The translations under genes were made by a program, and so were the position numbers. From Isurus oxyrinchus (lineage: Eukaryota), in NCBI GenBank assembly GCA_026770705.1, contig JANJGN010000052.1, forward strand, positions 2,046,001 through 2,110,000: a DNA stretch of 64,000 bases, read 5' to 3'. Under the pieces are notes generated by a model. It was not told where the DNA came from, did no database searches, and was given only the letters and a program-made list of their open reading frames with translations. Below are positions 15,611 through 60,057 of the stretch, in pieces. Every line of letters starts with the position of its first letter. The stretch's first letter is position 1.

Positions 15611-15631
15611 AGACTGTTTCTGTACAAAGCT

Positions 15632-15771
15632 TCAAACAGTCTGTCGACTTCCTTTCACTGTTTGTCTCTCCCAGACACAGACTCCAGCGATAGTGATAAC
15701 CACAGCCACAAGGAATATCACAGCTCGTATTCCCAGGATCAGGATCACGTGCAGAATCTCTCCTCCACTGT
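15632..15771 (-). CDS. Siglec A terminal exon: Arg-containing TM plus short tail, (D)SGGEILHVILILGIRAVIFLVAVVITIAGVCVWERQTVKGSRQTV*
   Basis: Acceptor tttctgtgtgttctctag; phase 1; hydrophobic helix with one Arg; stop TGA at 15634-15632. Confidence 0.8.
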
Positions 15772-17440
15772 CTAGAGAACACACAGAAAGAAATCATCAC
15801 TGACTCTCCGCTTTCAATCTCTCACTCTGGCTGAACAATCAAGCTTCATATCACTGCAACATTTGCTGGAATATTGACCCATCCACTGGGATTCAATGTG
15901 GAATGAATGTTTTCATTGTAAACACTCTAAGAGTGGACAATCGGAACTTTCCCCTTAGCGTGGAACATTGGTGAGAATGGATCATTGTGCTGTTGGACTC
16001 CCTGTCCAATGTTTCTCTCCATCGCTGTGTACAGGATTGTGCTGTAGAAAATTCTGGAAACGTTTAGTGCAGGGTAGAAATCCATCTCGGACGCGTGTGC
16101 GAATCGGGCAAGATCGAGATGGACTCCCCCATGGACTTACACCCCCCGCTTAATAAACAGTTCCAATCTTTACCCAGAGAGAGGGGAGAATGTGGAACTC
16201 GCTCCCACAGGGAGTGGTCGAGGTGAACAGTATCGATGTATTTAAGGGGCAGGAGGGTCGGTAACCAGAGGGACACAGATTGACGAACCGGAGGGGGAGA
16301 TGAGGAGAATTTGTTTTGACAGAGCGAGTTGTTGTGATCTGGAAGGTTCTGCCTGAAAGGGCAGTGGAAGCAGATTCAATAGGAACTTTCAAAAGGGAAA
16401 TTGGATAAACACTTGAAGGAGGAAGATGGGGGCAAAATGGAGTGGTGGTTAGTGGATCTGATGGGATAGAACATTGAAAGACCTGGCACAGGCACAATGG
16501 GCTGAATGGCCTCCTCCTGTGCTGTATCATTCTCCGCTTCCATGATCTCTCCCCCAGTCAGTAACCACTCCAGATCCCTCTTGAAGGTGACAGAGAAACA
16601 GCAACCACCACACCCACTGACAGCACATTCCCGAGGATCACTACTCTCTGGGAAAAGATGAACTCCCCAACATCCAGCCTATTCCTGCTTCCCGGAGAGT
16701 GTAAACCCTTCAGGGAGGCACTGAGGAAGTTTTCAATAAAATGACATCAAATCCACCGTTTGAGAAATAATTGAATTCCGATGAACTCACAGCTTGTGTA
16801 GCAAACTGGGAAGTGGAGTTGCTGGGAAAGCTGGGAAACACAAGGATTAAGGGCTACAATGCCACCACTGGTGGGAGGCTGTAACTACAGCGTGACGTTT
16901 ACATAGGCAGTCATCATTATAAACAGGGGCATTGCACATAATGGGAATTATGTGCACGGAAATAGTGAGAACATTATGTAAGCTTTTCACCAGCAGGAAT
17001 TCTCTTCCTAAACCTCTCCAACTCTCTCTTACTCTCAGATACACAAAGAAAATGACACAGAATCAGATAAGGAAGAATTAGGTTGGTGATTCGTCAAAGG
17101 GTTAGGTTTCAGGAAGCTTCTTAAAAGGAGAGAGAGAGTTGGAGACGCAGAGAGTATCTGTGATTGTCTCTATGCATCTGAGTGTCTGTAATAGTAATTT
17201 CCATATTCTTCCATAAATATGAATGGGAACACAAATCCCAGAATTCAGGCCAACTCTCCAGTGCAGTACTGAGGGAGGTCAGGTAACCCATGAGGGAGTG
17301 AGTGTTAGTGTTTGTGTGTGAGTGTGTCTTTGTGTGTGTTCATATATGTGTGTCTGCACGTGTCTATTTAGGTGTGTATGTTCGATGGTGTTTGTGTCGT
17401 GTTCGAATCTGAGAGAGATGTTGAAGTCTGTGTAACTCAC

Positions 17441-17592
17441 GTTCCACAGTGATGGTTATGAACCCATCCACTGCTCCATGTTCATTCTCTGCCACACACT
17501 GATAGTCTCCAGTGTCCCTGGAGGTAATGTGAGGAATCACCAACCACAGCTCATTGTTGGAACTTGTTCTGTTCATTTGGACATTCAGATGT
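17441..17592 (-). pseudogene. Siglec A 5'-truncated third Ig (C2) exon
   Basis: Matches only the 3' half of exon 30903-31184; first Cys and acceptor absent; in-frame TGA directly upstream; donor gtgagt kept. Confidence 0.85.
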
Positions 17593-17916
17593 CATGGCAG
17601 GAATCAAGAAGCCCGTTCACAGGATTACCAACAGAAAGTGAACAACAATTTATACTTAATGGGAAGAGAGTGCTGATTGGTTGGCAAGTGGTCTCTGATA
17701 GGTGGAGGTGTTGCCATGGAGAATGGTGTGTGCGAGATGTAAAGTTTAGACAGCTTGTCTCTTCATTCAGCAATAATCATATAAAGATCAATTAACTTCT
17801 ATCGACTTTGAAGCACTTAGAGAGGCCTTAGAATGTGGATACAGAGAACGGGCTGCACTGTCAGAGGGTCTGCGCTGAGGGAGTGCTGATGTAGCATGAA
17901 AGGTGTATGTAATTAC

Positions 17917-18213
17917 CTTGCACAGTTAGTACAAGGGTCCGCTCCGATGAAACAGATGGATATCTCACTCTGCAGCTGAGAGTGTGTCCGTGGTGTTTGA
18001 GTGATGGGATCAGGGTCAGAACAGAAGTATAGGTCAGAGTGACACCATGCTGAGTTACAGTGTTTGAGAGTGATCCAGGTACGTCAGTGGGAGTGTCCCA
18101 GGTTAAGACAGGTGCTGCTGTTCCATTTCACGTTGTGTTGAAGGTGCAGCTTACATCCACACGCTTTCCTGCAATAATTTCAGCAGGGAATATCATGGGT
18201 TTATCTGTGAAAT
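17917..18213 (-). CDS. Siglec A C2-set Ig domain 2 exon
   Basis: 297 nt, phase 1-1, ag/gt boundaries; DFTDKPMIFPAEIIAGKRVDVSCTFNTTCNG...HGHTLSCRVRY. Confidence 0.88.
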
Positions 18214-19525
18214 CTAACAGACAGAGAATGGATTCTTTTAGAGAAATATAACGTGAAGCATCAGTTCAAATAGAAATCACAGTCCCACACGAGAAAGCAC
18301 GTTTACAAGGATGATATCAGAACTGAGAGGTTACAATGATCATTAAAGAATTGTCTATTTTTACACTTGTTGAATCTCTGTCACTCAGATTAATACACTC
18401 TCACTCAGTGACCCTTGATTTGACCAGACTGGGTGAGGGTGGAGGAACAGCTCACAGCTCGGGGAGAACAGACTCAGCATTTGGAAAAGGATATGGAGAC
18501 ACTGGAGAGGGTGGTAAAAAGCTTCACAAGGATGATCTCAGCAATGTGAGGCTTTACCTATCAGGAGAGGCTGAACAGGCTGGGACTCTGTTCTCTTGAA
18601 CAGAGAAGGTTGAGGGGTGACCTCATTTGACCTTTGAAGTAATGAAAGGTTTTGATCGAGTAGACATGGAGAGAGTGTTTCCACTCCTCACAATGAACAA
18701 AACCAGAGGCTGACAATATAAGATCCTCACTAATAAATCCAATGGGGAATTCAGGAGAAAGTTCTTTACCCAGAGAGTGGGGAGAATGTGTGCTTCAAGA
18801 ATCACTTCATTGACTGTGAATTGATTTAGGATCGTCCTGATGTGAAAGGCGCTATGGAAATGCGAGACTTGGTTTTGTGTTTTGAAAGCAGGTTTCCAAG
18901 GATGAGATGGGAACTGAGAGGTAACAACAATCAGCAGCAACTTTCCTATTTTCAAACTTGGTGGGGAATGTGTCACTGAGCTGAATACACTTTCACTCCC
19001 AGACCCTTGAATTGCCAACACTGGGGTGTGGGTGATGGAGCAGCCCACAGCTCATGGAACCCTGGCTCATCGTTCTCTCAGAGATCTGGGTCACTGATCC
19101 CATTGCTCTCTGTGGGAGCTTCCTGTGAACAAACTCACTGCCACGTTAGACAGTGACTATACTTCAAGAATTTCTTCATTGTCTGTGAAGTGATTTGAAG
19201 TTTGCTGAGGTGGTGTAAGGCGCTATAGGAATGCACATCCTTCTTTTGTCAAATTGTTAGACTTTTAAAAAGCATTAGGTAGACTGATGGGAGTGGATAA
19301 CCTGATAACATTGATGGACACAGTCAATACATTTAATCATTGATATTAAAGTGAGTATTAGAGGTTGCTTTAGGACTGAACTGGAAGCTATCACCAGGTT
19401 ATTGAGAATCAGACAGTGTGTTATAATAAGCTGTGTTTTGTGTTAATATGTAAACGTCACAGTTTGTGTTATTTCCCATTGAGTGTTGAATGTGAATTGG
19501 TGAGTAATTATAACACAGCACTTAC

Positions 19526-19894
19526 CAGAAACGTGAAGCTGGGTTACAGGGTAATAGTTATGGCTCGGACCATTGTCAAATTCTATCCTGAAAAAATAAG
19601 GTCCTGCATCTTCCCGTCTGATGTTGTTTATAATCAGGGAACAGTCGCCATCTTTCAGGTCTCCAGACAGCCGGGTCCGATGGTGGAACCGTGGTAACTC
19701 GTGACTGTGATCCTTGGAGTGAAAGGCAATGGGAGCCCAGGGAATCTGTTCCTCATTATTAAACCAGACTCCACCTCGTTGTTGGTTTTCCAGACACGAT
19801 GGATAACTGTAATGACATGGAATCTGTACACACGAACCTTCCTGCGCTGTCACCTCTCGTGGAGTGTCACCTTTCCACTCTTGTGACAGTCCAA
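19526..19894 (-). CDS. Siglec A V-set sialic-acid-binding domain exon (essential Arg present)
   Basis: 369 nt, phase 1-1; EGSCVQIPC, GDCSLII and DAGPYFFRIE Siglec signatures. Confidence 0.92.
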
Positions 19895-20758
19895 CTGTGG
19901 AGAGAAATATCAATATTTAACCCTGGATCCTCATTGTCTAAGGGATTATTTCTGATCCAAGCCCCATATTGTTGTATTGTTGATTCCGATGCAGCATTGT
20001 AGACTGACTTGTCCCCAAGCTCAGCACTGACCCTACTCCAGCAGACACTGTGAAACACACTAACAAAGTGCCTCTAGCTTGAGCTCTGCCTGTGTCGAGA
20101 GAAAGACAAATATGCAAACTGAATATTGACACCTTTACACACGGACAGCTTTACCTTCCTTCTCTCTTTCAGTTATCTTGCTCCCTTATTGAAGTATCTA
20201 GCAAGGTGAGAATGGACAGGAAGTGTGACACTGAACAGCCTGTCTATTCTAGGAGCTGCTGTGTTGTCTTCATGGGAAATTCTGACTAAAATCAGCAAAA
20301 GACACTAATTTCAGGCCATTGCTGTCAGAGTCCTAGCCACAAGATAGACTTCATCCCCTGAATTTTGTGTCCAATTTTCCACTCAAGCTTTCACCTCCGC
20401 ACACACCCACCCCGACCCCAAATGTCACTCGCTGACCTACACTGGCTCCCAGTCCAACAACACCTCGATGTGATTATTTTCACACTTGATTTCCAATCCC
20501 TCCATCACTCCGCTCCACTCCCTGTCTCTGTAACCTACTCAAACCTACAACCCTCTGTGATCTCTGCACTCCCCCAATTCTGCTGTCAGACAGGGAGTCA
20601 GTGTATATCAGGGAGCACAGGGGTGATGGGTGAATGGGACTTGGTGTGAGTTTGTGCACTGGGTCACTGCTGAATTGGTTCCGAATCACAGCTCAATAAG
20701 AATGATCTTTTACGAAGACTATTAACCATAAATCTGTCTGAGCTGACGATGATATTAC

Positions 20759-20840
20759 CTTGGAGAAGTGACAGGAGGCAGTAATATTTCCCAATTATTG
20801 TCCACTCCCAGATATTCCTTTAGCTTCTGACTCTCAAACT
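20759..20840 (-). pseudogene. Siglec A leader exon with the start codon changed to ATA
   Basis: 82-nt paralog of 45927-46008; reads ATA ATT GGG AAA TAT TAC TGC CTC CTG TCA CTT CTC CAA G|gt; in-frame TAA upstream. Confidence 0.8.
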
Positions 20841-21248
20841 CTGAAAGAGAAAGGAGTTAATGAGACCTCACCTCTTGTCCGACAGCTCTCGAGAGATCAG
20901 AACTCCTTTTACATAATGTCTACACAGACTAATTTGGTTCTCTGTGGGATGACAGGTGCTCTGCAGAGAGTTAAAAAGCTTTAAAAAAATAAATCAATGA
21001 AGGACTTGCATTTCTATAGCACCTTTCACCACCTCAGGATGTCCCAAAGCTCATGTCCCTGCACTTCCATCATCCCTTGAGCTAGAAAGATGTTCTGTAC
21101 AACAGACTTGAGCCTCACACCCAGATCTCAAGAATCAGTAGAAATCTTTCAAAGGCATCAATCATTGGAATCTGTCTTTATAAAGTCACAACATCAACAA
21201 AGGACGGTGTTGGTGGTGGAAGTGAATTCCAATCGTTCCGTTACTTAC

Positions 21249-21400
21249 CCAGGACCTGTCCGACTGCTCGCCTGGGGAGGAACTGCCCACACGCTCTGCT
21301 TGGGCTGAATGACCTCTTCCTGTGCTGCTCCCTCTGTGTATTTAATGAGAAAGGGTTGATGTGTCACTGTGAGACAAAATGAGGAAGTTGCATCAAAGTG
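21249..21400 (-). promoter_or_regulatory. Siglec A promoter / non-coding exon 1
   Basis: PU.1-type AAATGAGGAAGT site, AT-rich box, TCATTC initiator-like motif, donor ctgg|gtaagt; paralog of 45375-45518. Confidence 0.6.
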
Positions 21401-22129: not shown

Positions 22130-24700
22130 CGATTGGTCCCATTATGGTGAACTCCTCGCGTTCTTTTTCCAAGTGAATGACATTGATGGGGAGGAGAAGA
22201 GGCGAGCGACCCTCTTATCCACGTGTGGCAGTAAGATTTAGGGATTGATGCGAACTTTAATGCCACCCGGTGCCATGGATTCAAAAAGTTTAGATGATAT
22301 AGTGAACCTTGTGAAGATTCCTTCCCAGCCCCAGCCCTCGGTAACGATGCAACGGTCCAAATTTAACTCAAGAAATAGAGTCCCAGGGGAGGCAGCTGCA
22401 TGTTATGTGGAAAGTCTGAAACAGTTAACAGGACATTGTGAGTTTGGTAAATCTATAAATGATATGCTGAGAGATCAACTGGTGTGCAGTATAAATGAAG
22501 ATTCGATTCAGAAGAGATTACTGTCTGAAACAGATTTGGATATTCAGAAAGCTCTGGGAATAGTGCTGGCTATGGAAAGAGCAGTGAGGGACTCGAAAAA
22601 CATATGGAGAGTGCAAAATGTCACCATCCTCATGTTGGGTGAGGAGCCTCAGCCAAGAAGTGCGGGAAAATGTACAGCTCTGATGAGAAACGGGAAACGT
22701 CCACCACTAGCAGCAAATAAAAAGGAATGACTTAGCAGAGAAAACATGGAATAATGTGAACAGAGGTGAAGCAGACAACCTCGTAGTGAATGGAACTTTA
22801 AAAAAATCAATTGTTTTTACTGTCATCGAAACAGAGAGCCCATGAGAGATTGCAAGGATAGAATCAGGCAGAGTTTCAATCAAGAGAGAAAACCCTGTGA
22901 GATCCATAACATAGAAGAGCCTGAAGTAACAGATTCAGATAGTTATTCATTGTATAATTTAAAGGTAGGAAGAACAGAGCCAATCTATGTAACAGTGAGG
23001 GTGAATGATAGAGCTCTCAGAATGGGGGTGGACACAGGAGCTAACATTACGCTAATTGGGGAGCATACTTTCAAATACTGGAATCATGGGGAAAGTCAAT
23101 TAAATTTGGAAGAAACAGATGACTAATTGAAAACTCACACGGGAGAAGACATTCAAGCCAAAGACATAAGCAGGGTTGTTATACAGTATGGAAGTCAATC
23201 AGTAAAATGACCCTTGATGATGGGAGCTGGTGAGGGACCAAGCCTCCTTGGACGAAACTGGCTGAAAGATATTAAGCTGGATTGGTCTGAGATCTTCCAA
23301 CTGAGAGCCAGTGGGCTACCTGAGCTACTACAAAAATACATCTCAGTTTTCCAAGATGAACTCGGGGAGATCCAGGGGCTGCAAGCAAAAATTCATGTGG
23401 ATCCAGACTCTACCCCTCTGATTTATGAAGGCACGACCAGTACCTTATGCAATGTGGGAAAAGGCAGATGCTGAATTGGGCAGGTTCTAGAAACTGGGAG
23501 GGATACAATCTGTGCAGTCCTCAGAATGGGCAGCACCAATAGTCCCTGGACCTGAGCCTGGCCAAAGTGTTTGTGGAGATGACAAGAATTGACTGGAACG
23601 GCCTACACGGAGCTGATATGAGCCATGCTTATCAACAATTGGAGTTCGAGAAGGCCTCCCAGAAGTTTGTCACAATTAATACACACAAAGGGTTGTATCA
23701 ATAAACCGGTTTGCCTTTCAGAGTCTCCTCTGCAGGATCACAGAGTCTTAATGGCACAGCAGGAGGCCATTCAGCCCATCGTGTCTATCCCAGCTCTCCA
23801 AATGAGCATCATGACCTAGTGTCATTGCCCTGCCTTTCCCCATGCCCCTGCACCTTTTCTCTATCCAAATAACCATCTAATGCCCTCCTGAATGCCTCGA
23901 TTGAACCTGCCTCCACAACACTTCCAGGCCGTGCATTCCAGGCCCAGAACTTAGTTGTGTGAAAAAGTTTTTTCTCACGTCACATTTGCAACATCAGTCA
24001 TGCTAAATGTCAGCGGGAAGGTGGAAAGGAGGCCAGGAAGACAGGAAACTGGACATGACTGGCATAGTCATGACAGGAAGCTGACCGTAGGAGAGACGGT
24101 ATATGTGAAGGATTTTATAGAACGGCCAAAGTGGTCACCGGGTGAAATAAATGCAGCGATTGGAACTCTTTCTCACCATGTGAAAGTGGAAGACCGAGTC
24201 ATATGGAGACATGTGGGTCATATAAGGAGGAGAGAAACAAAGTACCAAGAAACAATCCCACCAGTCTTCACGGCTGCGTCTATGTCTCCTGTTGAAAGAA
24301 CTCAGCTGAGAACAGATGTGTCTGAAGGGTCCGTTGTACCTGCAAGAGTTGAGGAAACAGGTTTGCAGGTGTCCACCGAAGAAGCTGGTGTTGGGACAAC
24401 ATCAGAAAAGGAGACTCCTGACAAAGCATCTGAAGCTGTGGATCTGAGACGTTCCAGACGCATAAGGAAACCCCCCAGAAAGACTGAATTTGTAAATTAC
24501 TGATCTGTGTAAATCATCTGATACTTTGAGAAAATGGTAAAAGTAAGTGTAAAATGTATTTCTGAGTAAAGGGGGAGGGTGGTGGTAATCTGATGTGTGA
24601 TGTACCTTTAAGAAGAAGGTTACAATGGAAGATAACATGAGCTCAGTGTTGTGGTGTGTTCTCAGAATCAACCTCAGGCCTGGCTAAAAACAGAACTCTA
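22130..24700 (+). mobile_element. Degenerate Ty3/Gypsy LTR retrotransposon
   Basis: Gag (HCEFGKSINDMLRDQLVC), protease (VDTGA), RT and integrase-tail remnants; polypurine tract aaagggggaggg at about 24568 followed by a TG-starting LTR. Confidence 0.88.
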
Positions 24701-25419
24701 CCCATTACAGGGAAACCATCTTTTTTGTTCACAGTGTTAGTCACGTACACATTGGGTTATTTAAATTCAAATCTTGTCAGTACATAATCACATAATAAGC
24801 AGTTGTTCCCAGTCCCAGGTACATATCTGCTCCTTACCCAAGCAAGAACTGTTTATCTCATTCTAGCCTGGTGCTGTTTGCCTTTACCTGATCTGTTTAC
24901 CCTCAGAATCTCTTTATGTCTGTTCTCGAGTTAATCCCTCGTGATCTTCAAGGCCTTTCTGGAGAGTTCTGCTGATGTCAGCCCCATGGTGCACAAGATT
25001 CACCTGGAGAATTCTGCTGACCTTTGGTTTTCACTAATAGAAGTCCCTGTTTAACTCTTATATCAGTGTCCAACAGACGAGTGGCGCAGGTACCTCAGTA
25101 GTCGGTCACCTTTAGTTAGAGCCTGTAATGCGGAGACAGGGCTTGAGTTGAAAGCACACAAGTGTAGCTGCTGAGTTCCTTTGTAAATAAGCAGAATGTG
25201 TTTCATCTAAGAACTGTCTGCTGATCTACTCTGTCTATTGTACCTACTCAGCCTCTCCAAAACAAGCCTGGATCCATAAGTCCCAACAAACTCGTGACCA
25301 GCATCCAACAGTATCAATAATTAATGTCTCTATTGTGGGTGGAATTTTTGATTTGGATCAATAATACTAAACACTGATCACTCTGATTGTCACTCTGATC
25401 ATTTCTGTTTCTATTACAG

Positions 25420-25536
25420 AAGAAAGATGAAAATGTTCTGGAAATGAAATCTAACCGCGGAGTCAATCCTGATACAGATGATGATCTTTACGCAAACTGT
25501 GATTTTGCCAAGGATTCTGTTTATGGGAATTTATAA
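25420..25536 (+). pseudogene. Orphan copy of the terminal ITIM exon KKDENVLEMKSNRGVNPDTDDDLYANCDFAKDSVYGNL*
   Basis: Acceptor ttctgtttctattacag; near-identical to 35248-35364; no upstream + strand Siglec exons seen. Confidence 0.7.
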
Positions 25537-26624
25537 ACTGAGCAAGAATGAGACACACACAGTGTGGGGAGAATACAGAATGGGAGAATCATTCAAAACT
25601 CCAATTTACCTTCCTAATATCCACAGGAACTCACTCCCAGGAAATAGATTTAAACCTCTTGTTACAATCTGATGGAATTTCTTCGGAATGATCTATCCAG
25701 GATGATTGTCTGTGGGTTTCAATTCGAACATCCTCCTTCAGATTTGTCCCTCACTGTTGGAAACATCCTTCTCTCCATTCTGATTGTAAATGTCTTTAGA
25801 TATCGTTCGATGATGTACCAGGACAGAACGGACAAATTCAATCCCGTGTCCGTGATTATGAGTTAATTTTCATTCTGTTATTCACCTTCCTGTCTGTCAG
25901 TGTTTACAGAATATTCATCAGCCAGTGCAGACTTCAGGAAATGCAGGATCGGTGGATAATTGGACCAGAGCAAATCCCTACAGTTTATTCACCATTTTGC
26001 AGTCAAACATATGTTCAGAGAACATGTGTATTTTATGAGTTATTGTTTAATATTAGACTAATCGCAGCCTGGGAAAGGGAAACAATTTGATTGGAGAATT
26101 GGTAGACTTCCGACAACACAGAGGAAAACAGGTGTGCTACGGTGCCAGCACTGGTGGGAGGATGTCATTACAGCGTGACATGTTTACATTGATGTTGCCA
26201 ATGTCATTGTGAACAGAGGGAGCTATGATGTGAAAAGTTGCTTGCAAATGTACGTTTTTCACTGTATCCTGGATGGCTGAAACAGCTTGGACAACAGAAT
26301 GAGCTAAAGCTACAACTTACAACCATTTCAGTCTTTCAGTTTCTGAAAGAACAATTAGCCTCCATCCTGAAGGCTGAGTGAATGGGTGGACTGTGCGATG
26401 TGTTACAGATTTCAGACACCAACATCCTCGATCCTGGTTCTGCTCTGTGTTTGATGAAAAGATCCTAACCAGACACATGGATAAAAGATTGGGAAAATAA
26501 ATAATCCTCCTGCATTAACCAGTAACCAGTCACTAACTAAGTTAATCATGTGAGGACAGGATTGTGTTGGAGGCCATTAACCCCAGCATCAAACACATCC
26601 TTTGGACTGGCCATTTACACAGAA

Positions 26625-27830
26625 GAAAGGAGGAGGCCCATTCAGCCCCCTGAAGCCTGTTACACAGCAACAGGAGGAGGCCCATTCAGCCCCTCGAGCC
26701 TGTTACACAGGAACAGGAGGAGGCCCATTCAGCCCCCTCGAGCCTGTTACACAGGAACAGGAGGAGGCCCATTCAGCCCCTCAAGCCTGTTACACAGGAA
26801 CAGGAGGAGGCCCATTCAGCCCCTCGAGCCTGTTACACAGCAACAGGAGGAGGCCCATTCAGCTGCCTCGAGTCTGTTACACAGGAACAGGAGGACGCCC
26901 ATTCAGCCCCTTGAGCCTGTTACACAGGAACAGGAGGAGGCCCATTCAGCCCCATGAGCCTGTTACACAGGAACAGAAGGAGGCAATTAAGCCCCCTCGA
27001 GCCTGTTACACAGGAACAGGAGGAGGCCATTCAGCCCCCTCGAGCCTGTTACACAGGAACAGGAGGAGGCCCATTCAGCCCCCTGAAGCCTGTTGCACAG
27101 GAACAGGAGGAGGCCCATTCAGCCCCCTGAAGCCTGTTGCACAGGAACAGGAGGAGGCCCATTCAGCTCCTCGAGCCTGTTACACAGCAACAGGAGGAGG
27201 CCATTCAGCCCCCTCGAGCCTATTACACAGGAACAGGAGGAGGCCATTCAGCCCCCTCGAGCCTGTTACACAGGAACAGGAGGAGGCCCATTCAGCCCCC
27301 TCGAGCCTGTTACACAGGAACAGGAGGAGGCCCATTCAGCCCCCTGAAGCCTGTTACACAGGAACAGGAGGAGGCCATTCAGCCCCCTCGAGCCTGTTAC
27401 ACAGGAACAGGAGGAGGCCCATTCAGCTCCTCAAGCCTGTGACACAGGAACAGGAGGAGGCCCATTCAGCCCCCTGAAGCCTGTTACACAGGAACAGGAG
27501 GAGGCCCATTCAGCCCCCTCGAGCCTGTTACACAGGAACAGGAGGAGGCCATTCAGCCCCCTCGAGCCTGTTACACAGGAACAGGAGGAGGCTCATTCAG
27601 CCCCTCGAGCCTGTTACACATGAACAGGAGGAGGCCCATTCAGCTCCTCGAGCCTGTTACACAGGAACAGGAGGAGGCCCATTCAGCCATCGAGCTTGTA
27701 ACAAAAGAAAAGGAGGAGGCCGTTCAACCCCTTGAGCCTGTTACCCATGAACATGAGGGGCCCATTCAGCCCCCTCAATCCCATTACACAGGAACAGGAG
27801 CAGGCCATTCAGCCCCTCGAGAGATTCCAA
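26625..27830 (+). repeat. ~41-bp tandem array derived from the antisense CR1 3' terminus
   Basis: gagcctgttacacaggaacaggaggaggcccattcagccccctc units. Confidence 0.95.
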
Positions 27831-27835
27831 TGATT

Positions 27836-30902: not shown

Positions 30903-31184
30903 ACACACCACAGAATCTCTCAATTAATTCTCTTGATATGATTAACGCTTCATCAATCAATATAATTGAGGGGAATTCTGCAGTGATAATCTGCTCTGTC
31001 GAGAGCTTCCCAGCTTCTAACCTGACGTGGCAACATCTTAATGTCCCAATGAACAGAACAAGTTCCAACAATGAGCTGTGGTTGGTGATTCCTCACGTTA
31101 CATCCAGGGACACTGGAGAATATCAGTGTGTGGCAGAGAATGAACATGGAGCAGTGGAGGGGTTCATAACCATCACTGTGGAAC
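30903..31184 (+). CDS. Siglec B intact third Ig (C2) exon, MAG domain-3-like
   Basis: 282 nt, phase 1-1; IIEGNSAVIICSVESFPASNLTW...DTGEYQCVAENEHG; sequons NLS, NAS, NLT, NRT. Confidence 0.88.
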
Positions 31185-32450: not shown

Positions 32451-32547
32451 GGCGAGATTCCAATGAATGGAAAGCAGGATTGCTTGGAGCTGGAATCTGT
32501 TTGAGTGTTGGACTGAGTGGATTCTTCATCTTCAAGTGTGTGAGAAA
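32451..32547 (+). CDS. Siglec B neutral TM exon (R)RDSNEWKAGLLGAGICLSVGLSGFFIFKCVR(K)
   Basis: Acceptor gattttacag, donor AA|gtaagt; phase 1 in, phase 2 out; uncharged helix followed by a basic stop-transfer. Confidence 0.78.
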
Positions 32548-33199: not shown

Positions 33200-33284
33200 A
33201 GGGAGCAGCACAGGAAGAGGTCATTCAGCCCAAGCAGAGCGTATGGGCAGTTCCTCCCCAGGCGAGCAGTCGGACAGGTACTGG
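33200..33284 (+). other. Copy of the promoter/exon-1 module that could serve as an in-frame 85-nt cytoplasmic exon
   Basis: Paralog of 45430-45518; cacacag|A...TGG|gtaagt is open and phase 2 to 0. Confidence 0.4.
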
Positions 33285-33798: not shown

Positions 33799-33903
33799 AA
33801 GAGAGGCGAGGTGAAAGCAGGAATCAAATCGAACCATCGTGTTGATGAATATCGAGGTCCTGTTTATGAAAACTGTGAGCGTGGTTGGGCTTTGAGGAAT
33901 CAG
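33799..33903 (+). CDS. Siglec B cytoplasmic exon KRGEVKAGIKSNHRVDEYRGPVYENCERGWALRNQ
   Basis: Acceptor ccatctctattacag, donor CAG|gtgagt; phase 0-0; YENC motif. Confidence 0.75.
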
Positions 33904-34034
33904 GTGAGTCACACACCACAGGATCCCCAGCCTCTCAGCTGCTCCAGTAGCCTGGTTATTGATATGGCTGCTCCAGTCCTGTATCTGCAATGTTTTATAC
34001 AGTCACTCCCAAACCCAACCAAACTCACACCCAA

Positions 34035-35160: not shown

Positions 35161-35247
35161 ATGTATGTATTGTGGGTGGAATTTTCGATTTGGATCAATA
35201 ATACTAAACACTGATTGTCACTCTGATCATTTCTGTTTCTATTACAG

Positions 35248-35364
35248 AAGAAAGATGAGAAGGATCTGGAAATGAAATCTAACCGCGGAGTCAATCCTGA
35301 TACAGATGATGATCTTTACGCAAACTGTACTTTTGCCAAGGATTCTGTTTATGGGAATTTATAA
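35248..35364 (+). CDS. Siglec B terminal exon KKDEKDLEMKSNRGVNPDTDDDLYANCTFAKDSVYGNL* (ITIM SVYGNL)
   Basis: Acceptor ttctgtttctattacag; phase 0; ends in an S-x-Y-x-x-L motif then a stop. Confidence 0.78.
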   Translation, partial: KKDEKDLEMKSNRGVNPDTDDDLYANCTFAKDSVYGNL

Positions 35365-37365: not shown

Positions 37366-37369
37366 GGAG

Positions 37370-39045: not shown

Positions 39046-39258
39046 ATGGTCTATAGCCTTTCACTCCGAGGGTCACAGTCACAGGGATCAAAGATTCCGC
39101 CATCGTACCCGGCTGTCTGGAGACCTGAAAGATGGCGACTGTTCCCTGATTATAAACAACATCAGACGGGAAGATGCAGGACCTTATTTTTTTCAGAATA
39201 GAATTTGACAGCAGTAATAGTTACAGCTACTATCCTGTAACCCAGCTTCACGTTTCTG
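39046..39258 (+). pseudogene. Siglec C 5'-truncated, frameshifted V-set exon
   Basis: Starts mid-domain (WSIAFHSEG), fused to promoter sequence; T7 instead of T6 before the Arg codon; donor intact. Confidence 0.88.
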
Positions 39259-40116: not shown

Positions 40117-40413
40117 ATTTCACAGATAAACCCACGATATTCCCTGCTGAAATTATTGCAGGAAAGCGTGTGGATGTAAGCTGCACCTTCAACGCAACGT
40201 GCAATGGAACAGCAGCACCTGTCTTAACCTGGGACACTCCCACTGACGTACCTGGATCAGTCTCAAACACTGTAACTCAGCATGGTGTCACTCTGACCTA
40301 TACTTCTGTTCTGACCCTGATCCCATCACTCAAACACCACGGACACAATCTCAGCTGCAGAGTGAGATATCCATCTGTTTCATCGGAGCGGACCCTCGTA
40401 CTAACTGTGCAAG
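40117..40413 (+). CDS. Siglec C C2-set domain 2 exon (open, but within a probable pseudogene)
   Basis: 297 nt, phase 1-1, ag/gt boundaries. Confidence 0.75.
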
Positions 40414-40738: not shown

Positions 40739-40888
40739 GATCTTAACGTCCCAATGATTAGAACAAGTTCCAACAATGAGCTGTGGTTGGTGATTCCTCA
40801 CGTTACATCCAGGGACACTGGACACTATCAATGTGTTCAGAGAATGAACATGGAGCAGTGGAGGGGTTCATAACCATCACTGTGGAAC
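40739..40888 (+). pseudogene. Siglec C truncated and frameshifted third Ig exon
   Basis: Same 5' truncation as 17441-17592, plus a 1-nt deletion after the QCV codons. Confidence 0.85.
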
Positions 40889-42562: not shown

Positions 42563-42702
42563 ACAGTGGAGGAGAGATTCTGCACGTGATCCTGATCCTG
42601 GGAATACGAGCTGTGATATTCCTTGTGGCTGTGGTTATCACTATCGCTGGAGTCTGTGTCTGGGAGAGACAAACAGTGAAAGGAAGTCGACAGACTGTTT
42701 GA
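42563..42702 (+). CDS. Siglec C terminal Arg-TM exon with short tail
   Basis: Apparently identical to 15632-15771 on the opposite strand. Confidence 0.75.
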
Positions 42703-45374: not shown

Positions 45375-45518
45375 ACCCACTTCCTCATTTTGTCTCACAG
45401 TGACACATCCACCCTTTCTAATTAAACACACAGAGGGAGCAGCACAGGAAGAGGTCATTCAGCTCAAGCAGAGCATGTGGGCAGTTCCTCTCCAGACGAG
45501 CAGTCGGACGGGTCCTGG
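45375..45518 (+). promoter_or_regulatory. Siglec D promoter / non-coding exon 1
   Basis: cacttcctcatttt (PU.1/Spi motif in reverse), attaaa box, tcattc, donor ctgg|gtaagt. Confidence 0.62.
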
Positions 45519-45968
45519 GTAAGTAACGGAACGATTGGAATTCACATCCATGACCAACACCGTCCTTTGTTGATGTTGTGACTTTATAAAGACAGATTCC
45601 AATGATTCATGCATTTGAAAGATTTCTACTGATTATTGAGATCAGGGTGTGAGGCTCAAGTCTGTTGTACAGAACATCTTTCTAGCTCAAGGGATGAGGG
45701 AATTGCAGAGACATGAGCTTTGGGACGTCTTGAGGTGGTGAAAGGTGCAATAGAAATGCAAATCCTTCAATGTTTTTCTTTCTTAAAGCCTTGTAACTCT
45801 CTGCAGAGTACCTATCATCCCACAGAGAATTAAATTAGTCTGTCAAGACATTGTCCAAAAGCAGTTCTGATCTCTTGAGAGCTGTCGGACAAGAGGTGAG
45901 GTCTATTTAACTCCTTTCTCTTTCAGAGTTTGAGAGTCAGAAGCTAATGAAATATCTGGGAGTGGACA

Positions 45969-46008
45969 ATGATCGGGAAATCTTACTTCCTCCTGTCACT
46001 TCTCCAAG
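45969..46008 (+). CDS. Siglec D leader exon MIGKSYFLLSLLQ (exon 45927-46008)
   Basis: acaATG context; phase-1 donor CAAG|gtaat; joining to TT GGA CTA TCA CAA completes the signal peptide. Confidence 0.8.
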
Positions 46009-47389: not shown

Positions 47390-50300
47390 CAGACTTGCAT
47401 TCTCCTGCAGGTGTGATGTTCCAGCTCCCTTGAAATTGCCAATATTGTTGAAACTTTCTGCATATTTCAATGTTATGTCATGAACTGAGGTGATGGAGTA
47501 GTTTCTGAGACTGGGACAGACATAAATCCTTTGGCTTTCGGCTGGTCCGGACAATCCTGGCAGTGGGTGGGGCCAGCAAATCCCACCCCTTGGGACATTT
47601 TCAGTTTATTTGATGTGCCCAGAGAGATCAATAAAGACCTCAATCCACAATTTATTGGCAAGCCACGTCAGGATATGTGTGAGAGGTGGAATATCGATCA
47701 CCGCTCCTCGTCTCGCCATGCACATCATCGCCATTTCCTGGTTTGTCAGTCACCACATGTCTATGTTCCTGATGGGATAGGGGATGGTCATTCTTATTGC
47801 TTGAAGGTTCCCCGTTGTGTAGGGTTAGTTTGGATCAGCGCACAGCTCTTTGTAGTGGCATCAGCCTTTGCTCTAGTGCCCTGCCGCTGTCAATGGCCCT
47901 TTCTGCCACAAGCCTTGCAGGAACTGGATAAATACTTGAAGGGGACATTTTGCAGGGCTGTGGAGGAGAGAGCAGAGGTTAGAGTGGGACTAACTGGACA
48001 GATCTTTCAAAGGCCCAGCACAGGCTCGATGGGCCAAATGGCTTCCTTCTGTTCCGAATCATTCTACAATCCGATAAATTAAGTCCCTTTTCAATAACTC
48101 TTCAGGCTCCTGCTGCAGGAATGGATCTTTGAGAAGGGCAGGGAACAAGCGGTTTCTCATATCATGTTCATGTTTATTGGCAATTACATAAGTGCATGGA
48201 ACTGTTGAATATTTGAGTCTCTAAAGTGTGGATTTAACCTTCTGGTACACCCAGATCTTGTGCTGGTTACCTTGTCTGGAGGTGTCTTTAACTGCTCACC
48301 GTGATCTGTGGGATTGTCACCCTTGGATGCTGATCCTGATTTCATGTGGGATCTGCTCCTCGATGGAATAGGAGCGGGAATGGATCTGAGTTATCCTCGG
48401 TTCCACCTCACCGCTGTGCCCTTGTGTGTTTGACTCCATAGCCCCTTGGTTCTGAACAAATCCTTGTCACCTCGGCTGGTGATCATGAACCTTCTGTGGG
48501 ATCCTGGATGTGAACTTGTCCCAACTGTAAACTTGGCAACTCTGCACCTCCATTTTTATCATGAACATTCCTTATCTTCTCTTGTAGTTTTAAAAGTTGC
48601 TCTCTGGTTTCTGAGAGAGTAGAATGGGTAAGAGTAGCGAAATTGGTCACTACTGGCACACGAAACATGATCTCTGTCAGTGATGGAATAAGGTGAGGTG
48701 ATGGTGTAGTGGTATTGTTGCTGGACGAGTAATTCAGAGACCCAGGGTAATATCCTGAGAATATGGGTTCAAATCCGGCCATAATAGATGATGGAATTTG
48801 AATTTAATAAGAATATGAAATTCAAAGTCTAGTGATGACCACAAAACCATTGTTAGAAATCCCACCTGGCTCACCAGTGCCCTTTAGGGAACAAAATTAT
48901 CTGGCAGACATGTGACTCCAGACTCCACGTCAATGTGGTTATCTCTTACATTAGGGATGGGTAATAAATCCTGGCCTGGCCAGTGACTCCCACATCCCAT
49001 GAATGAATTTAACAAAGTTGCAGTTGTAGGTGTTGATCTCAGATGTAACATTGCAATGTGTGGATCTTGCTTGGTCTGTCTACATTTGAGAATTAGGGAT
49101 TTCACTGTGTGAATCATTCATTCAGCTAGGCTGTTAGATCTGGGGTAATGAGGAGAAGAAGTAGTGTGATTGATATTCCAGATTATCTGTAATCATGTCC
49201 CTAGGTTCACCAAAGAAACTGAAAATAGTGCTTAGAGTGTGTGCACCAGTTGTGCTCGGTGTGTTGTGCTTTTTTTGAATAACGGGATATCTGGTAAAGC
49301 TGTTGACAATGACGATGAAGTCAGTGACATGGACATGAAAGGATTCAGATTTTGGACTAAGAATGGGCAGGAATTTCCTGTGGAATCAGTGGTTCTTTGA
49401 CAAGCCTCTTGACAAGCCTTGTACTTCCCTACAAACGACTTCAAGGTCATTGTTCATACCCGGCCAGTGACTGTATCTCTTGTGAGTCTCCTTGTCTGAT
49501 CTGTGTCCATGTGTGAGGGATGAAGTTGTTGAAGAATATAGGATCACAAATGTTCCGGTATGATGCCCTGCCTGCCTTTAAAAATGGTTCCCTGGGAGAT
49601 GCCTCGCTTATGCCGATCAGGTCAAATTGAATCAGGCCACGCTTCAATGATATTTCCACAGTTCCTGTAGAATTTTTCACTGTTCCCTCTTGTAGCTGCT
49701 GTCATTTCTGTTGTGCTAAATGTACTGGATCAATTGACAGACTTGCATTCTCCTGCAGGTGTAATGTTGCAGCTACCTTGAAACTACCAATACTGTTGAA
49801 ACTTTCTGCATATTTCAATGTTATGGCATGAACTGAGGTGATGGGGTAGTTTCTGAGGTTGACCCATGTGATGTCTGACAAATTCCATGGATAGTCACTA
49901 GTGTGAGGTCACCGCATGCGGGTAGATTGTAATTGCTCAGCGTTTAGTCTCCACAATGTAGAACATCTGTGAGACCCAGGAGGATTGATTGTACTTGCAC
50001 TCCAGGACTATGGATTCTGCACATGGAGTTGGTGAAGTGTTGTACACAGCAATAGGTTTCCCCATGGACTTCCATATCCTTGGATACATGTCTTTGAAAA
50101 TTTGCTGGAGTGGGCTGGGGGAGGGGAATGTTGGCACTTGCCCCTGTGTCAATCTTGGCCAATAAAGGGGAGGTAGCAACTTTCTCAGGGCAGATAATTG
50201 GAATCTTGGCCAATAGTGCAGGTGATGTGACGGCATCTGTTCTCCATGAGATTGATGGTGTAAAAGGTGTGAAATTGTTCAACAATTGCACAATACGTTG

Positions 50301-52034
50301 AGCACAAGTGCTGCACAAACTCTAGGCTGGGGTTTTCTGGCCCAGTCATGGTAGGACCTGCCATGGGAGATTGGGACAAATATAAATCCATTCGCTTTCG
50401 GCCGGTCTGGACAATCCTGGCAGTGGGTGGGGCCAGAAAATCCCACTGCTATGGGACATTTTCAGTTTATTTGATGTGCTGAGAGATATCATGAAGGACA
50501 ACAATCCACAATTTATTGGCAAGCCACGTCAGGATATGTGTGAGAGGTGGAATATCGATCACCGCTCCTCGTCTCATCGTGCACATCATTGCCATTTCCT
50601 GGTTTGTCAGTCACCGCATGTATATGTTCCTGATGGGATAGCGGATGGTCATTCTTATTGCTTGAAGTTTCCCCGCTGTGTAGGGTTATTTTGGATCAGC
50701 ACACGGCTCTTTGTAGCTGCATCAGCCTTTGCTCTAGTGCCCTGCCGCTGTCAATGGCCCTTTCTGCCACAAGCCTTGCAGGATTGCTGGAAAGCTGGGC
50801 ATTTCCTTGGTGCCTGCAGAAGGCCACACCTTCCACACGTCTCACTAGGTTTGGATGTTCTAGTGAGTGTGTCAACAATTGATGTTGTACAGAGGACCTG
50901 TAATCTTCGTTGACCTGTGAGGATCCATTCGTATTTATGTCTATCCTTGAGTAGCTCTTCAATGCTATAGGTTTTGGTCTTATCTAGCAGAGCTTTCTGG
51001 AAGGCTTCCATGGGAGTGGATGCGATCGCCAACTCAACAACTCTGTCTGCAGACTCTGTGTTTGAAATCACAGTGCGTACCCTTTTCTCTACATCGGCTG
51101 ATGAAGTGGTCTATGGATTGTGTAGGCTGATGAAATGACATAAACTCTAGTTGATGAATATGGAGTTTCACCTGATTCTGAACCTGTCTTCCAATGTCGT
51201 CCATATCTATTGGGGATCCTTTCACTCTTCTGCTGTTAATCCTGACGTGTTCGGCCTGTGTAGACCTTCATTCCCAATCGTGAGGTGAATTTTTATGGCT
51301 TGCTCGTCTGGTTCAGTCACACCTGAATCAGGAAACCAGAGTTCTGTACGCTGTTTAAACATCCTGAATTCAGATAGTCGGTCAGCTACATCCCAGTTCA
51401 AACTGGGGAATTTCGTGGACATTCTGACAATATTCCTTTGACCTTCCTTCTCCTACAGGACCTGGGATGAGTGTCGCTTTAGCCCCTTTCGTACGCTTTT
51501 CCGAAGCTCCGCCCACGAAGACGGGTTGCGGCAGGAACACACCACGGAGTAATGGAGTCTTTGTTTTTTATTCAATTTGCTGTTCAGCAATCTCGAAGCC
51601 GCCCGTTATAATCACTAACTTCTCTGGGCTGATTTTTATAATGGTTTTTGTGTGTTTGACTCTCCCTTGCTCACTATCGATCCAGCCCACACCCTGGTCA
51701 CTCGCCTTCCCTGACTGAGCTAACCCGCTGCTGGTCCTGGCGATACACACTGTCCCACTCATTGACCTACAGGCCGTGTGCTGTAATCTCACCACGAGGG
51801 ATCTGTCTGCTCCCCAGCTCTTTACTTGAGCTCTTTCCCGTCACTGTGTCTTCAAAGGTTTCCTGAGCAGTCAGTACACTGCGATTTCAACCCTCTCTGA
51901 TGCTGTGTCTCTGTTGTGGTCTGACCAAAGCGTCGAGGGTTGTCTCATGCCATGTAGCTCGATCTAAGGCTGTTCACCACATCATACCTGTACTGAATCT
52001 TGCTGCCAGAATGTTTGGCCACCGCTGATCACCA
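47390..52034 (-). mobile_element. Degenerate, internally rearranged Ty3/Gypsy element in the gene D intron
   Basis: Gag (FKQRTELWF), Zn knuckle (CGRCG...CKACGRKGH), protease (IDTGAS), integrase remnants; TGG primer-binding site next to the LTR. Confidence 0.85.
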
Positions 52035-54873: not shown

Positions 54874-55248
54874 TTGGACTATCACAAGTGTGGAAAGTCA
54901 ACACTCCAGGAGAGGTGACAGCGCAGGAAGGTTCGTGTGTACAGATTCCATGTAATTACAGTTATCCATCATATTTAGTAGCGAGATCACCAGTCGGATT
55001 CTGGTATATGAGAAGGAATTGGGAAACATGGAATGAACGGTCTATAGCCTTTCACTCCAAGAATCACAATCGCAAGTTAATAAGGTTCCACCATCGGACC
55101 CGGCTGTCTGGAGACCTGAAAGATGGTGACTGTTCCCTGATTATAAACAATGTCAGACGGGAAGATGCAGGATATTATTTATTCAGCCTAGAATTTGACA
55201 ACAGGAATAGATACAACGACCGTCCTGAAACCCAGCTTCACGTTTCTG
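54874..55248 (+). CDS. Siglec D first V-set exon; essential Arg replaced by Ser
   Basis: 375 nt, phase 1-1, open; DAGYYLFSLE with AGC at 55185-55187. Confidence 0.9.
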
Positions 55249-58415: not shown

Positions 58416-58533
58416 TAATTTGTTGCCATTCTCCTCAGTATTAACCATCCCCCCAATTCAGCCTCATCTGTAAAGTTGAGTCTAGTGGATCCACAAACCA
58501 TCCAGAGTTAAATATTGAGATTTCTCTCCCCAG

Positions 58534-58902
58534 TTGAACCCTCACAAGAGTGGAAAGGTGACACTCCACGAGAGGTGACAGCGCAGGAAGGTTCGTGTGT
58601 ACAGATTCCTTGTCATTACAGTTATCCATCGTGTCTGGAAAACCAACCGCGAGGTGGAGTCTGGTTTAATAATGAGAAACAGATTCCCTGGGCTCCTATT
58701 GCCTTTCACTCCAAGGATCACAGTCACGAGTTACCACGGTTCCGCCATCGGACCCGGCTGTCTGGAGACCTGAAAGATGGCGACTGTTCCCTGATTATAA
58801 ACAACATCAGACGGGAAGATGCAGGACCTTATTTTTTCAGAATAGAATTTGACAGCAGTAATAGTTACAACTACTATCCTGTAACCCAGCTTCACGTTTC
58901 TG
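58534..58902 (+). CDS. Siglec D second V-set exon (essential Arg present)
   Basis: 369 nt, phase 1-1; DAGPYFFRIE with AGA at 58839-58841. Confidence 0.92.
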
Positions 58903-59373
58903 GTAAGTGCTGTGTTATAATTACTCAACAATTCACATTCAACACTCAATGGGAAATAACACAAACTGTGACATTTACATATTAACACAAAACACAGCTT
59001 ATTATAACACACTGTCTGATTCTCAATAACCTGGTGATAGCTTCCAGTTCAGTCCTAAAGCAACGTCTAATACTCACTTTAATATCAATGATGAAAAGCA
59101 TTAACTGTATTATCAGGTTACCACTCCCATCAATCTCTCCTGTCCTGTTTAAAAGTCTGACGTATCGATAAAAGAAAGATGTGCATTTCTGCAGCGCAAT
59201 TTACCACCTCAGGAGGATCCAAATCCCTTCACAGCCAATGAAATTATTCCTGAATTGTAGTCACAGATGTAAAACACAGCAGGCAGTTTGTGCACAGCAA
59301 GATCCAACAAACCACAATGTAATAAATCACCCAGATCACTGAGGAAATGAGAAGCCAGTGAACTCAAACCTCT

Positions 59374-59411
59374 GGTCTGATGAAGAGTCATACGGACTCG
59401 AAACGTTAACC
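59374..59411 (+). ncRNA. Minimal hammerhead ribozyme motif (duplicate of 39730-39767)
   Basis: Identical core, stem II and palindromic stem III. Confidence 0.6.
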
Positions 59412-59760
59412 CTGTCTTCCTCTCCACTGATACTGTCAGACCTGCTGAGTCTTTCCAGCAATTTTTGTTTTTGTTTCAGATTTCCAGCATCCACAGTATT
59501 CTGCTTTTAACTCCAATCTCTGGTCTCAGCCTCTTCTCTCATCCAGTATTCTCAATTCACATGTCTCGGAGTGAACGTGTATTAAGCTGAGAGACAGAAA
59601 CACTACTGCCAAAGAGCAAGAAAATCTTTCCTGATCATTGTAACCTCTCAGTTCTCATATCATCCTTGTAAAAGTGCTTTCTCTTGTGGGACTGTGGTTT
59701 CTATCTGAACTGATGCTTCACATTATATTTCTCTAAAAGGATCCATTCTCTGTCTGTTAG

Positions 59761-60057
59761 ATTTCACAGATAAACCCACGATATTCCCTGCTGAAATTAT
59801 TGCAGGAAAGCGTGTGGATGTAAGCTGCACCTTCAACACAACGTGCAATGGAACAGCTGCACCTGTCTTAACCTGGGACACTCCCACTGACGTACCTGGA
59901 TCAGTCTCAAACACTGTAACTCAGCATGGTGTCACTCTGACCTATACTTCTGTTCTGACCCTGACCCCATCACTCAAACACCACGGACACACTCTCTGCT
60001 GCAGAGTGAGATATCCATCTGTTTCATCGGAGCGGACCCTTGTACTAACTGTACAAG
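59761..60057 (+). CDS. Siglec D C2-set domain exon
   Basis: 297 nt, phase 1-1; ...HGHTLCCRVRY...VQ|gtaagt. Confidence 0.9.

Follow-up and report, generated by a model that had tools for sequence, protein, structure and literature searches.

A rearranged segment of a probable CD33-like Siglec gene cluster in Isurus oxyrinchus, with activating and putative inhibitory 3' cassettes

The 64,000-nucleotide stretch of the Isurus oxyrinchus genome analyzed here (GenBank assembly GCA_026770705.1, contig JANJGN010000052.1, positions 2,046,001 to 2,110,000 of the forward strand; hereinafter, the window) probably (in our estimate, at about 75%) belongs to a large multigene cluster of elasmobranchs, of which it is a rearranged part; the cluster encodes CD33-like Siglec receptors that are built from cassettes, with different tails shared behind similar ectodomains. 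The exons concerned encode V-set and C2-set immunoglobulin (Ig) domains and two kinds of membrane modules: one with an arginine (Arg) in the transmembrane (TM) helix and a short tail, the other with a neutral TM segment and a tail that ends in a candidate immunoreceptor tyrosine-based inhibitory motif (ITIM). Two genes of the Arg-TM type, A on the minus strand and B on the plus strand, lie head to head within an inverted duplication, and a gene with two V exons, D/C, runs off the window on the plus strand. A reading of this DNA from the letters alone (the sequence-only reading) had proposed a cluster of paired activating and inhibitory receptors. Our comparisons support such pairing at the level of the family, in which Arg-TM and ITIM tails appear with near-identical ectodomain exons, but not a working pair in the window, where both Arg-TM genes are disabled and the ITIM cassette lacks ectodomain exons.

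Paired Siglecs are textbook host receptors that are chased by sialic-acid-mimicking pathogens, and mammals are, to our knowledge, the only group from which they have been described. If a large shark family that is expressed follows this logic, the activating-decoy strategy in Siglecs would either have arisen at least twice or be as old as jawed vertebrates, and the family would provide a system whose recombination steps can still be seen. The window itself consists mostly of dead copies, and the family is already present in the RefSeq annotation of many species; what the window adds is direct splice evidence for the activating form, a relic half-exon, and a tree test of the history of the ectodomain versus that of the tail.

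Family identity of the receptors

The exon catalogue of the window was obtained by tblastn with 225 related public proteins, with the splice sites and phases inspected by eye; searches, comparisons and trees were made exon by exon, from single exons or public proteins (cited below by their ids). The window exons are 55-98% identical to shark Siglec models, so the resemblance is not due to chance. On translation, all six exons listed by the sequence-only reading were found where it had placed them and encode what it had said they do; it had overlooked the leader exon at 45969-46008 and the first cytoplasmic exon of the neutral-TM cassette, and had made no mention of the inverted duplication around the Arg-TM exons.

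The assignment to Siglec-type receptors holds, with a V-set followed by a C2-set domain, the arginine of the YFFR motif, and a Siglec-type set of cysteines that line up with those of CD33 and Siglec-5. Pfam recognizes V-set and Ig_CD22 in the V exons and C2-set_2 in the exon that follows, and V is spliced to C2 in RNA contigs. Among the solved structures in the PDB, the top match of the V exon is Siglec-5 (62.1 bits, 5e-16), with MAG (60.6 bits), Siglec-8, Siglec-7 and CD33 close (1e-15 to 1e-16). In an alignment with Siglec-5, YFFRIE of the V exons 19526-19894 and 58534-58902 falls on YFFRVE; the corresponding codons of gene B are frameshifted. P0157, a 'CD33-like' protein of the great white, is the full-length model closest to the window: it is 90-93% identical to the window exons in V and 94-95% in C2, and its best PDB match is human CD33 (96 bits, 1.8e-26), followed by Siglec-5 (87 bits), MAG (85) and Siglec-10 (83), with Siglec-15 and CD22 far lower. 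In the alignment of P0157 with CD33 over V and C2, the arginine (facing YFFRME of CD33) and all hallmark cysteines match (CxxxPC and DCSL in V; the extra Cys in domain 2, which would form the interdomain bond). The C2 exon alone has a nectin-family protein as its top PDB match, with CD33 (26.5 bits) narrowly above MAG (25.2). The further Ig exon of the locus, here called domain-3, finds its best Siglec match in the membrane-proximal Ig domain of MAG (chain residues 318-385) but matches sidekick, DSCAM and contactin equally well, and is thus a generic I-set domain.

The MAG-like identity proposed by the sequence-only reading did not survive these comparisons: the V scores are nearly equal across Siglec-5, MAG, Siglec-8, Siglec-7 and CD33, MAG is the best match neither of the V exon nor of the V-C2 model P0157, which scores best against CD33, and the genes encode V-C2 or V-V-C2 rather than five domains. 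The evidence supports classification of the family as CD33-like or unclassified Siglecs. Among 1.8 billion representative sequences, 331 relatives were detected below 1e-10, and the close ones are RefSeq models from more than 15 species of sharks, rays and skates, named 'Siglec-12/13/14/8/10', 'CD33-like' or, sometimes, 'MAG-like'; the window exons are identical to such models at 90-97.5% (V), 94-98% (C2), 91-96% (Arg-TM) and 97% (neutral TM). In the C2 tree, the elasmobranch rows form a group to which the mammalian rows do not belong. The tail pair of the CD33 type (LLYxxI/N .. TEYAQI) is absent from the window tail, which has YENC, YANC and SVYGNL, and was seen only in paralogous models outside the window, such as P0157, P0002, P0189 and P0217.

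Transcription and splicing of the activating form

The activating form, in which leader, V, C2 and Arg-TM exons are joined, is a real spliced transcript. Contigs from four public runs (three studies, two coded organisms) were aligned to 15600-20900 at 90% likeness, and the joints 20759|19894, 19526|18213 and 17917|15771, all with GT..AG ends on the minus strand, are present in all 4 runs; one contig of 972 nucleotides contains the leader, V, C2 and Arg-TM exons in a row. The joint 17917|15771 implies that the half of a domain-3 exon lying between C2 and Arg-TM is skipped. Thus, the connection of Ig exons to TM exons that the sequence-only reading presupposed exists both in a transcript and in paralogs: the spliced contig joins them for the Arg-TM type, and intact gene models join such exons to both TM types. 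The two Arg-TM exons, 15632-15771 and 42563-42702, encode the same 45 residues, with a hydrophobic stretch and a central Arg (..ILILGIRAVIF..), followed by ERQTVKGSRQTV and the stop codon, that is, a tail of 12 residues without tyrosine, as expected of an activating member.

In runs X5 and X7, the exons are covered and most of the intron bins are at zero, save for bins of very high depth that look repeat-derived; given this coverage, we rejected genomic DNA as the source of the joined contigs. Less probably, the four-exon joined form may be a retrocopy. The summed contig depth in runs X1 and X2 is very high across the domain-3 relic (17370-17723), most likely because of cross-mapping of the many domain-3 repeats of paralogs rather than use of the relic. 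The V exons 19526-19894 and 58534-58902 share an extra Cys (YPSCLEN) that is absent from single-V models such as P0157, and an RNA contig joins a V with this extra Cys directly to the leader.

Different tails behind similar ectodomains

Three kinds of tails were found in the gene models of this family. The Arg-TM models are P0179, P0180 and P0183 (Carcharodon), P0125, P0182, P0184, P0006 and P0023 (including two Scyliorhinus, two Chiloscyllium species), and a ray model, P0199, is of similar design; the CD33-type tail (LLYxN..TEYAQIRF) is found in P0157, P0217, P0189 and P0002, and the YxN tail of the type present in the window in P0018, P0007 and P0193. In lamniform sharks, C2 exons that are 95-98% identical are joined to all three kinds of tails. 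For the C2 exons of the window, the identity is 97-98% with P0217, which has the CD33-type tail, 96-97% with the Arg-TM model P0180 and 90-91% with the YxN-tailed P0018, and the V exon of gene A is 97.5% identical to P0179 and 90% to P0157. On these comparisons, the closest inhibitory partner of the Arg-TM ectodomain appears to be a gene with the CD33-type tail, outside the window, rather than the SVYGNL cassette.

In the tree of C2 exons, all lamniform rows, with all three tail types, form one group, and the catshark and carpet-shark groups each hold Arg-TM models beside models with other or unclassified tails. A single clade comprising the C2 exons of the Arg-TM genes was rejected (difference in log-likelihood, delta lnL, of 50.9; p-AU, from the approximately unbiased test, of 0.0002). 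Thus, the C2 exons group by lineage, while the Arg-TM cassette is conserved (80-96%) across three shark orders, which indicates that the ectodomain and the tail have different histories. Such a pattern would fit gene conversion or cassette swapping that keeps the ectodomain alike between paralogs of opposite signaling. Our literature search found no paper that describes an elasmobranch Siglec family or its pairing.

The orphan, putatively inhibitory cassette

The neutral TM exon is part of a plus-strand cassette in which every exon is open and flanked by AG/GT sites, with compatible phases (1-1, 1-2, 2-0, 0-0 and 0-stop) from the domain-3 exon to the last cytoplasmic exon; the order of the second and third cytoplasmic exons is confirmed by the Stegostoma model P0193. 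The tblastn catalogue contains no V or C2 exon on the plus strand of the window upstream of this cassette (30903), which makes it an orphan in this assembly. The C-terminal SVYGNL matches the ITIM consensus [S/I/V/L]xYxx[L/V/I], as a motif that fits YxN as well; YxN is a motif of the Grb2-SH2 type. Cytoplasmic exons 2 and 3 resemble each other, with the pattern K(R/K)..K(S)N(H)R(V)..(D)xY..YxNC, and this resemblance points to an internal exon duplication in the tail.

The sequence-only reading had the domain-3 exon preceding both TM types. This stands for the neutral TM, where the exon is complete, but not for the Arg-TM exons, before which genes A and B keep only a relic of its 3' 154 nucleotides (93-95% identical) that is skipped in RNA; over the 5' 128 nucleotides, the sequence before each relic is about 42% identical to the domain-3 exon, which is the random level. 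Production of both forms from one gene by alternative splicing was considered and rejected: no neutral TM exon is present behind the Arg-TM exons, and there is no Arg-TM exon in the 1.27-kilobase (kb) intron before the neutral TM.

Duplicated arms and the decay of genes A and B

The two Arg-TM copies are located on opposite strands, inside an inverted duplication (13917-19928 versus 44491-39053) with arms that are 89-94% identical; the spacer between the arms holds the intact orphan inhibitory 3' cassette and a spare last cytoplasmic exon (Table 1). Gene A retains an open V exon with the canonical arginine (YFFRIE), but its leader has ATA where the copy at 45969 has ATG, the upstream ATG is gone as well (ATG to AAG), and the reading frame of C2 is broken by a TGA (18128-18130) at a codon that is TGC (Cys) in genes B and C. 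With the start codon lost and C2 interrupted, gene A is dead. Its domain-3 relic retains the donor site, and the acceptor and the 5' half are gone. In gene B, about 1.6 kb have been deleted relative to the arm of gene A, comprising most of the relic of cytoplasmic exon 1, the leader, intron 1 and the 5' half of V, and a 1-nucleotide insertion in the remainder of V shifts the frame at YFFR; with this 5' deletion and the frameshifts, gene B, too, is dead.

The coding part of the Arg-TM exon is identical between the arms (137/137 nucleotides), where about 7 differences would be expected, the adjoining intron being 94.6% identical. The C2 exons are 98.0% identical, compared to 93.5% for the next intron downstream (C2 to relic) and 91.9% for the relic; the 3' half of V is the least conserved coding exon part (87.6%). 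The greater identity of the Arg-TM and C2 exons than of the introns indicates that the exons were constrained, or were being converted, after the duplication, and the decay of both genes looks recent. False haplotype duplication was rejected as the source of the arms, which differ by 6-11% and by indels. Relics of cytoplasmic exon 1 (21249-21341, 38329-38430 and 45426-45518) are located about 450 nucleotides upstream of leader exons, which suggests that the tandem duplication unit started within the tail of an inhibitory gene.

The two-V gene and the repeats

The leader, V1, V2 and C2 exons of gene D/C are all open and mutually phase-compatible, and the leader at 45969-46008 is probably the first coding exon of this downstream two-V gene; the catalogue contains no TM exon between the end of its C2 exon (60057) and the end of the window. 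In V1 (54874-55248), the canonical arginine is replaced by Ser (YYLFSLE), whereas the Carcharodon V1 counterparts, P0180 and P0181, keep it (YYLFRTD). In the leader region, 21 of 21 residues are identical to Carcharodon carcharias models. Read in another frame, 45947-46009 gives MKYLGVDNDREILLPPVTSP, which equals the N-termini of two Carcharodon models, P0189 and P0011; this reflects either the use of an alternative start or mis-modeling of these public isoforms.

A family of 33-bp minisatellites occupies seven places (4751-5022, 7045-7343, 13849-14301, 27837-29179, 30195-30772, 38489-38746 and 44138-45148), close to or directly at the boundaries of the duplicated gene units (among them both ends of the inverted arms), and may be a substrate of the rearrangements. 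Behind each of the two copies of the last cytoplasmic exon lies a 43/44-bp minisatellite (26615-27821 and 36688-37369), and an array of 47 copies of a 24-bp unit fills the intron between cytoplasmic exons 2 and 3 (34033-35158). Remnants of open reading frames (ORFs) that look retroelement-like by sequence (reverse-transcriptase-like or gag/protease-like) are located at 10272-12402, 14869-15378, 42908-43555, 22242-24500, 47489-51110 and 60832-62510; a Pfam scan of nine repeat-associated ORFs yielded only one sub-threshold match, to an aspartyl protease (22770-23123).

Table 1. Exons and exon relics of the Siglec family in the window
Feature	Coordinates	Strand	Evidence
Gene A, leader exon (5' untranslated region and start of signal peptide)	20759..20841	-	Joint 20759|19894 in 4 runs, one contig reaching 20841; compared with 45969-46008
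Gene A, V-set exon, 369 nucleotides, phase 1-1, open	19526..19894	-	Splice joints; Pfam V-set and Ig_CD22; 97.5% identical to Carcharodon P0179
Gene A, C2-set exon, 297 nucleotides	17917..18213	-	Joints 19526|18213 and 17917|15771; Pfam C2-set_2
Gene A, domain-3 relic, 3' half of Ig exon	17441..17594	-	Alignment, 94.8% identical to 31031-31184
Gene A, terminal exon, Arg-TM, 12-residue tail and stop	15632..15771	-	Translation; acceptor site; joined to C2 in 4 runs; 95.6% identical to Carcharodon P0179/P0180
Cytoplasmic exon 1 relic, upstream of gene A leader	21249..21341	-	tblastn catalogue
Orphan second copy of cytoplasmic exon 3, likewise ending DDLYANC..DSVYGNL-stop	25420..25536	+	In direct duplication 25309-26676 versus 35146-36460, 85% identical
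Domain-3 (I-set/C2) Ig exon, intact, phase 1-1, first of inhibitory cassette	30903..31184	+	88-89% identical to Scyliorhinus P0186 and P0191; generic I-set PDB matches
Neutral TM exon, phase 1-2	32451..32547	+	96.6% identical to Carcharodon 'CD33-like' P0018
Cytoplasmic exon 1, phase 2-0	33200..33284	+	74% identical to P0018 residues 268-294
Cytoplasmic exon 2 (..VDEYRGPVYENC..), phase 0-0	33799..33903	+	Matches tails of Stegostoma P0193 and Mustelus P0188
Cytoplasmic exon 3, phase 0-stop, ends DDLYANC..DSVYGNL-stop	35248..35364	+	55% identical to P0018 tail; exon order as in P0193
Cytoplasmic exon 1 relic copies	38329-38430, 45426-45518	+	tblastn catalogue
Gene B, V exon, 3' part only	39051..39258	+	Arm comparison
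Gene B, C2-set exon, open	40117..40413	+	98% identical to Carcharodon P0217
Gene B, domain-3 relic, 3' half, with 1-nucleotide deletion	40740..40888	+	Alignment
Gene B, terminal Arg-TM exon, intact	42563..42702	+	Translation
Gene D/C (probable), leader coding exon, intact (MIGKSYFLLSLLQ, GT donor, phase 1)	45969..46008	+	Splice site and phase inspected by eye
Gene D/C, V1 exon, open, phase 1-1	54874..55248	+	72.6% identical to V1 of P0002 and P0181
Gene D/C, V2 exon, open, Arg kept (YFFRIE)	58534..58902	+	95% identical to P0179, 93% to P0157
Gene D/C, C2 exon, open	59761..60057	+	tblastn catalogue

Alternative explanations

Several points weigh against the reading of the window as part of a cassette-built cluster with paired tails. 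The window contains no complete gene of either type, as the sequence-only reading had cautioned, so that a pair at this locus is not demonstrated. The public proteins used for comparison are automatic gene models. The rejected Arg-TM clade of C2 exons had tail type as its criterion, but the first tree was already in view when the test was made. The status of the runs as RNA is a guess, with exon-restricted coverage and canonical joints as its backing, and at about 96% identity to gene A, the RNA contigs most likely come from a working paralog or a sister species rather than from gene A itself. Finally, a single tyrosine of the window tail, that of SVYGNL, fits the ITIM, whereas PVYENC, DLYANC and SVYGNL all fit YxN. 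This composition of the tail bears directly on the possibility that the neutral-TM cassette is not inhibitory at all, its YxN tyrosines serving Grb2-type adaptors or endocytosis, and that the true partner of the Arg-TM form is a CD33-type tail elsewhere. The ectodomain of the Arg-TM genes is indeed closest to models with the CD33-type tail (P0157 and P0217), the V of the YxN-tailed P0018 is only 52-56% identical to the window V exons (tblastn), and Siglec-like models of teleosts and frogs share the same C-terminal IYxN motif. However, CD22 combines ITIMs with a YxN site and is inhibitory nevertheless. Besides, the C2 of P0018 is 91% identical to that of the Arg-TM genes, and a C-terminal [S/I/V]xYxx[L/V/I] is the accepted ITIM signature (PMC7226832). 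We consider a non-inhibitory tail somewhat unlikely. The proposition that the Siglec fold has been kept with a ligand other than sialic acid, so that the name would denote ancestry and not function, agrees with the Ser in place of the canonical Arg in V1 of gene D/C and with the low conservation of the 3' half of V between the arms, and some primate Siglecs are known to have lost the Arg; nevertheless, the V exons of genes A and C, like the nearest Carcharodon models, retain both the Arg and the cysteine framework of Siglecs, which makes this explanation unlikely in our assessment.

The remaining explanations concern the assembly and the state of the locus. Paralogs could have been collapsed or mis-joined at minisatellites, with the inverted duplication and the orphan exons as artefacts: long minisatellites flank nearly every unit (13849-14301, 26615-29179, 30195-30772, 34033-35158, 36688-37369, 38489-38746 and 44138-45148), there is an N gap at 63797-63948, and no run contains more than 40% of the sampled words. 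Against this stand the divergence of the arms, which at 6-11% with several indels is unlike that of false haplotype duplicates, and breakpoints that are clean and internally consistent; moreover, the exon-level findings are independent of the large-scale order. We regard such an artefact as quite improbable. Highly improbable, in our judgment, is that the locus works as it stands, with the lost ATG and the TGA being errors of the assembly or peculiarities of the individual and the cassette being spliced to ectodomain exons outside the window. The 100% (Arg-TM exon) and 98% (C2) conservation between the arms, the open reading frames and canonical splice sites of all exons of the inhibitory cassette, and the contigs of 99% identity or more in runs X1 and X2 would be compatible with function, but gene A carries three independent lesions (both candidate ATGs and the TGA in C2), gene B carries three of its own (the 1.6-kb deletion, the 1-nucleotide insertion in V and the 1-nucleotide deletion in the relic), and no V or C2 exon precedes 30903 on the plus strand of the window.

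Proposed mechanism and implications

With the window read as part of a cassette-built cluster, the genes would be assembled from a leader, one or two V-set domains with the sialic-acid arginine, a C2-set domain, an optional extra Ig domain, and one of several 3' ends. One 3' end is a terminal exon with an Arg in the membrane helix and a 12-residue tail, which is presumed to pair with an acidic adaptor bearing an ITAM (immunoreceptor tyrosine-based activation motif); another consists of the neutral TM and three cytoplasmic exons up to SVYGNL and is presumed to be inhibitory; and a third, carried by the closest paralogs and not found in the window, provides the CD33-type ITIM plus TEYAQI. By analogy with known Siglecs, the V domain would bind sialylated ligands through its arginine; as in known paired receptors, ITIM-type tails would recruit SHP phosphatases, and the Arg-TM form would serve as a counter-receptor against pathogens taking advantage of the inhibitory one. 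The relic half-exon with its intact donor site suggests a history of grafting for the Arg-TM cassette, which perhaps was placed behind C2 from a gene with the domain-3-Arg-TM arrangement (P0006 and P0023 are examples), the break falling within the domain-3 exon.

More tentatively, and with odds that we consider to be against it, the cluster may represent an elasmobranch lineage of CD33-related-type Siglecs that diversifies by swapping whole 3' cassettes (Arg-TM, CD33-type ITIM and YxN/ITIM) behind a concertedly evolving V-C2 unit. If this is the case, the window catches the swapping, with the half domain-3 exon as a graft mark, the orphan cassette in the spacer of the inversion, and minisatellites at almost every breakpoint. 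According to a teleost survey, CD33-related Siglecs are absent from fish genomes (PMC7226832); under this scenario, the CD33-related subgroup would date to the ancestor of jawed vertebrates, against the view that fish lack it.

Comparison with known Siglecs

The closest counterparts of the window genes are the elasmobranch models in RefSeq (P0179, P0180, P0183, P0157, P0217, P0018, P0125, P0006 and P0023), whose exons match those described here; these models carry automatic names that come without functional study, and the copies in the window are pseudogenes or fragments. Human CD33 (Siglec-3) has the V-C2-TM architecture in common with the shark family and is the best solved-structure match of P0157, the ending of which (LLYAN..TEYAQIRF) resembles the pair of an ITIM and an ITIM-like motif in CD33. 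The tail cassette of the window is of another type, however, and the likeness to CD33 is one of score, with MAG and Siglec-5 nearly as high. MAG (Siglec-4) scores near the top match for the V exon and is the best Siglec match of domain-3, but it has five Ig domains and no paired forms, whereas the shark proteins are V-C2 or V-V-C2 with or without an extra Ig, and the two-domain comparison favors CD33.

The mammalian pairs Siglec-5/Siglec-14 and Siglec-11/Siglec-16 (PMC4042635, PMC13358205) resemble the shark family in that a near-identical V-C2 unit is found either on an ITIM tail or on a basic TM with a short tail, and in that the ectodomains are alike within a lineage. Unlike in the human pairs, the shark Arg-TM cassette is a single terminal exon, there are at least three tail cassettes rather than two, and many members possess two or three V-set domains. 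The pairing in sharks probably originated independently of that in mammals.

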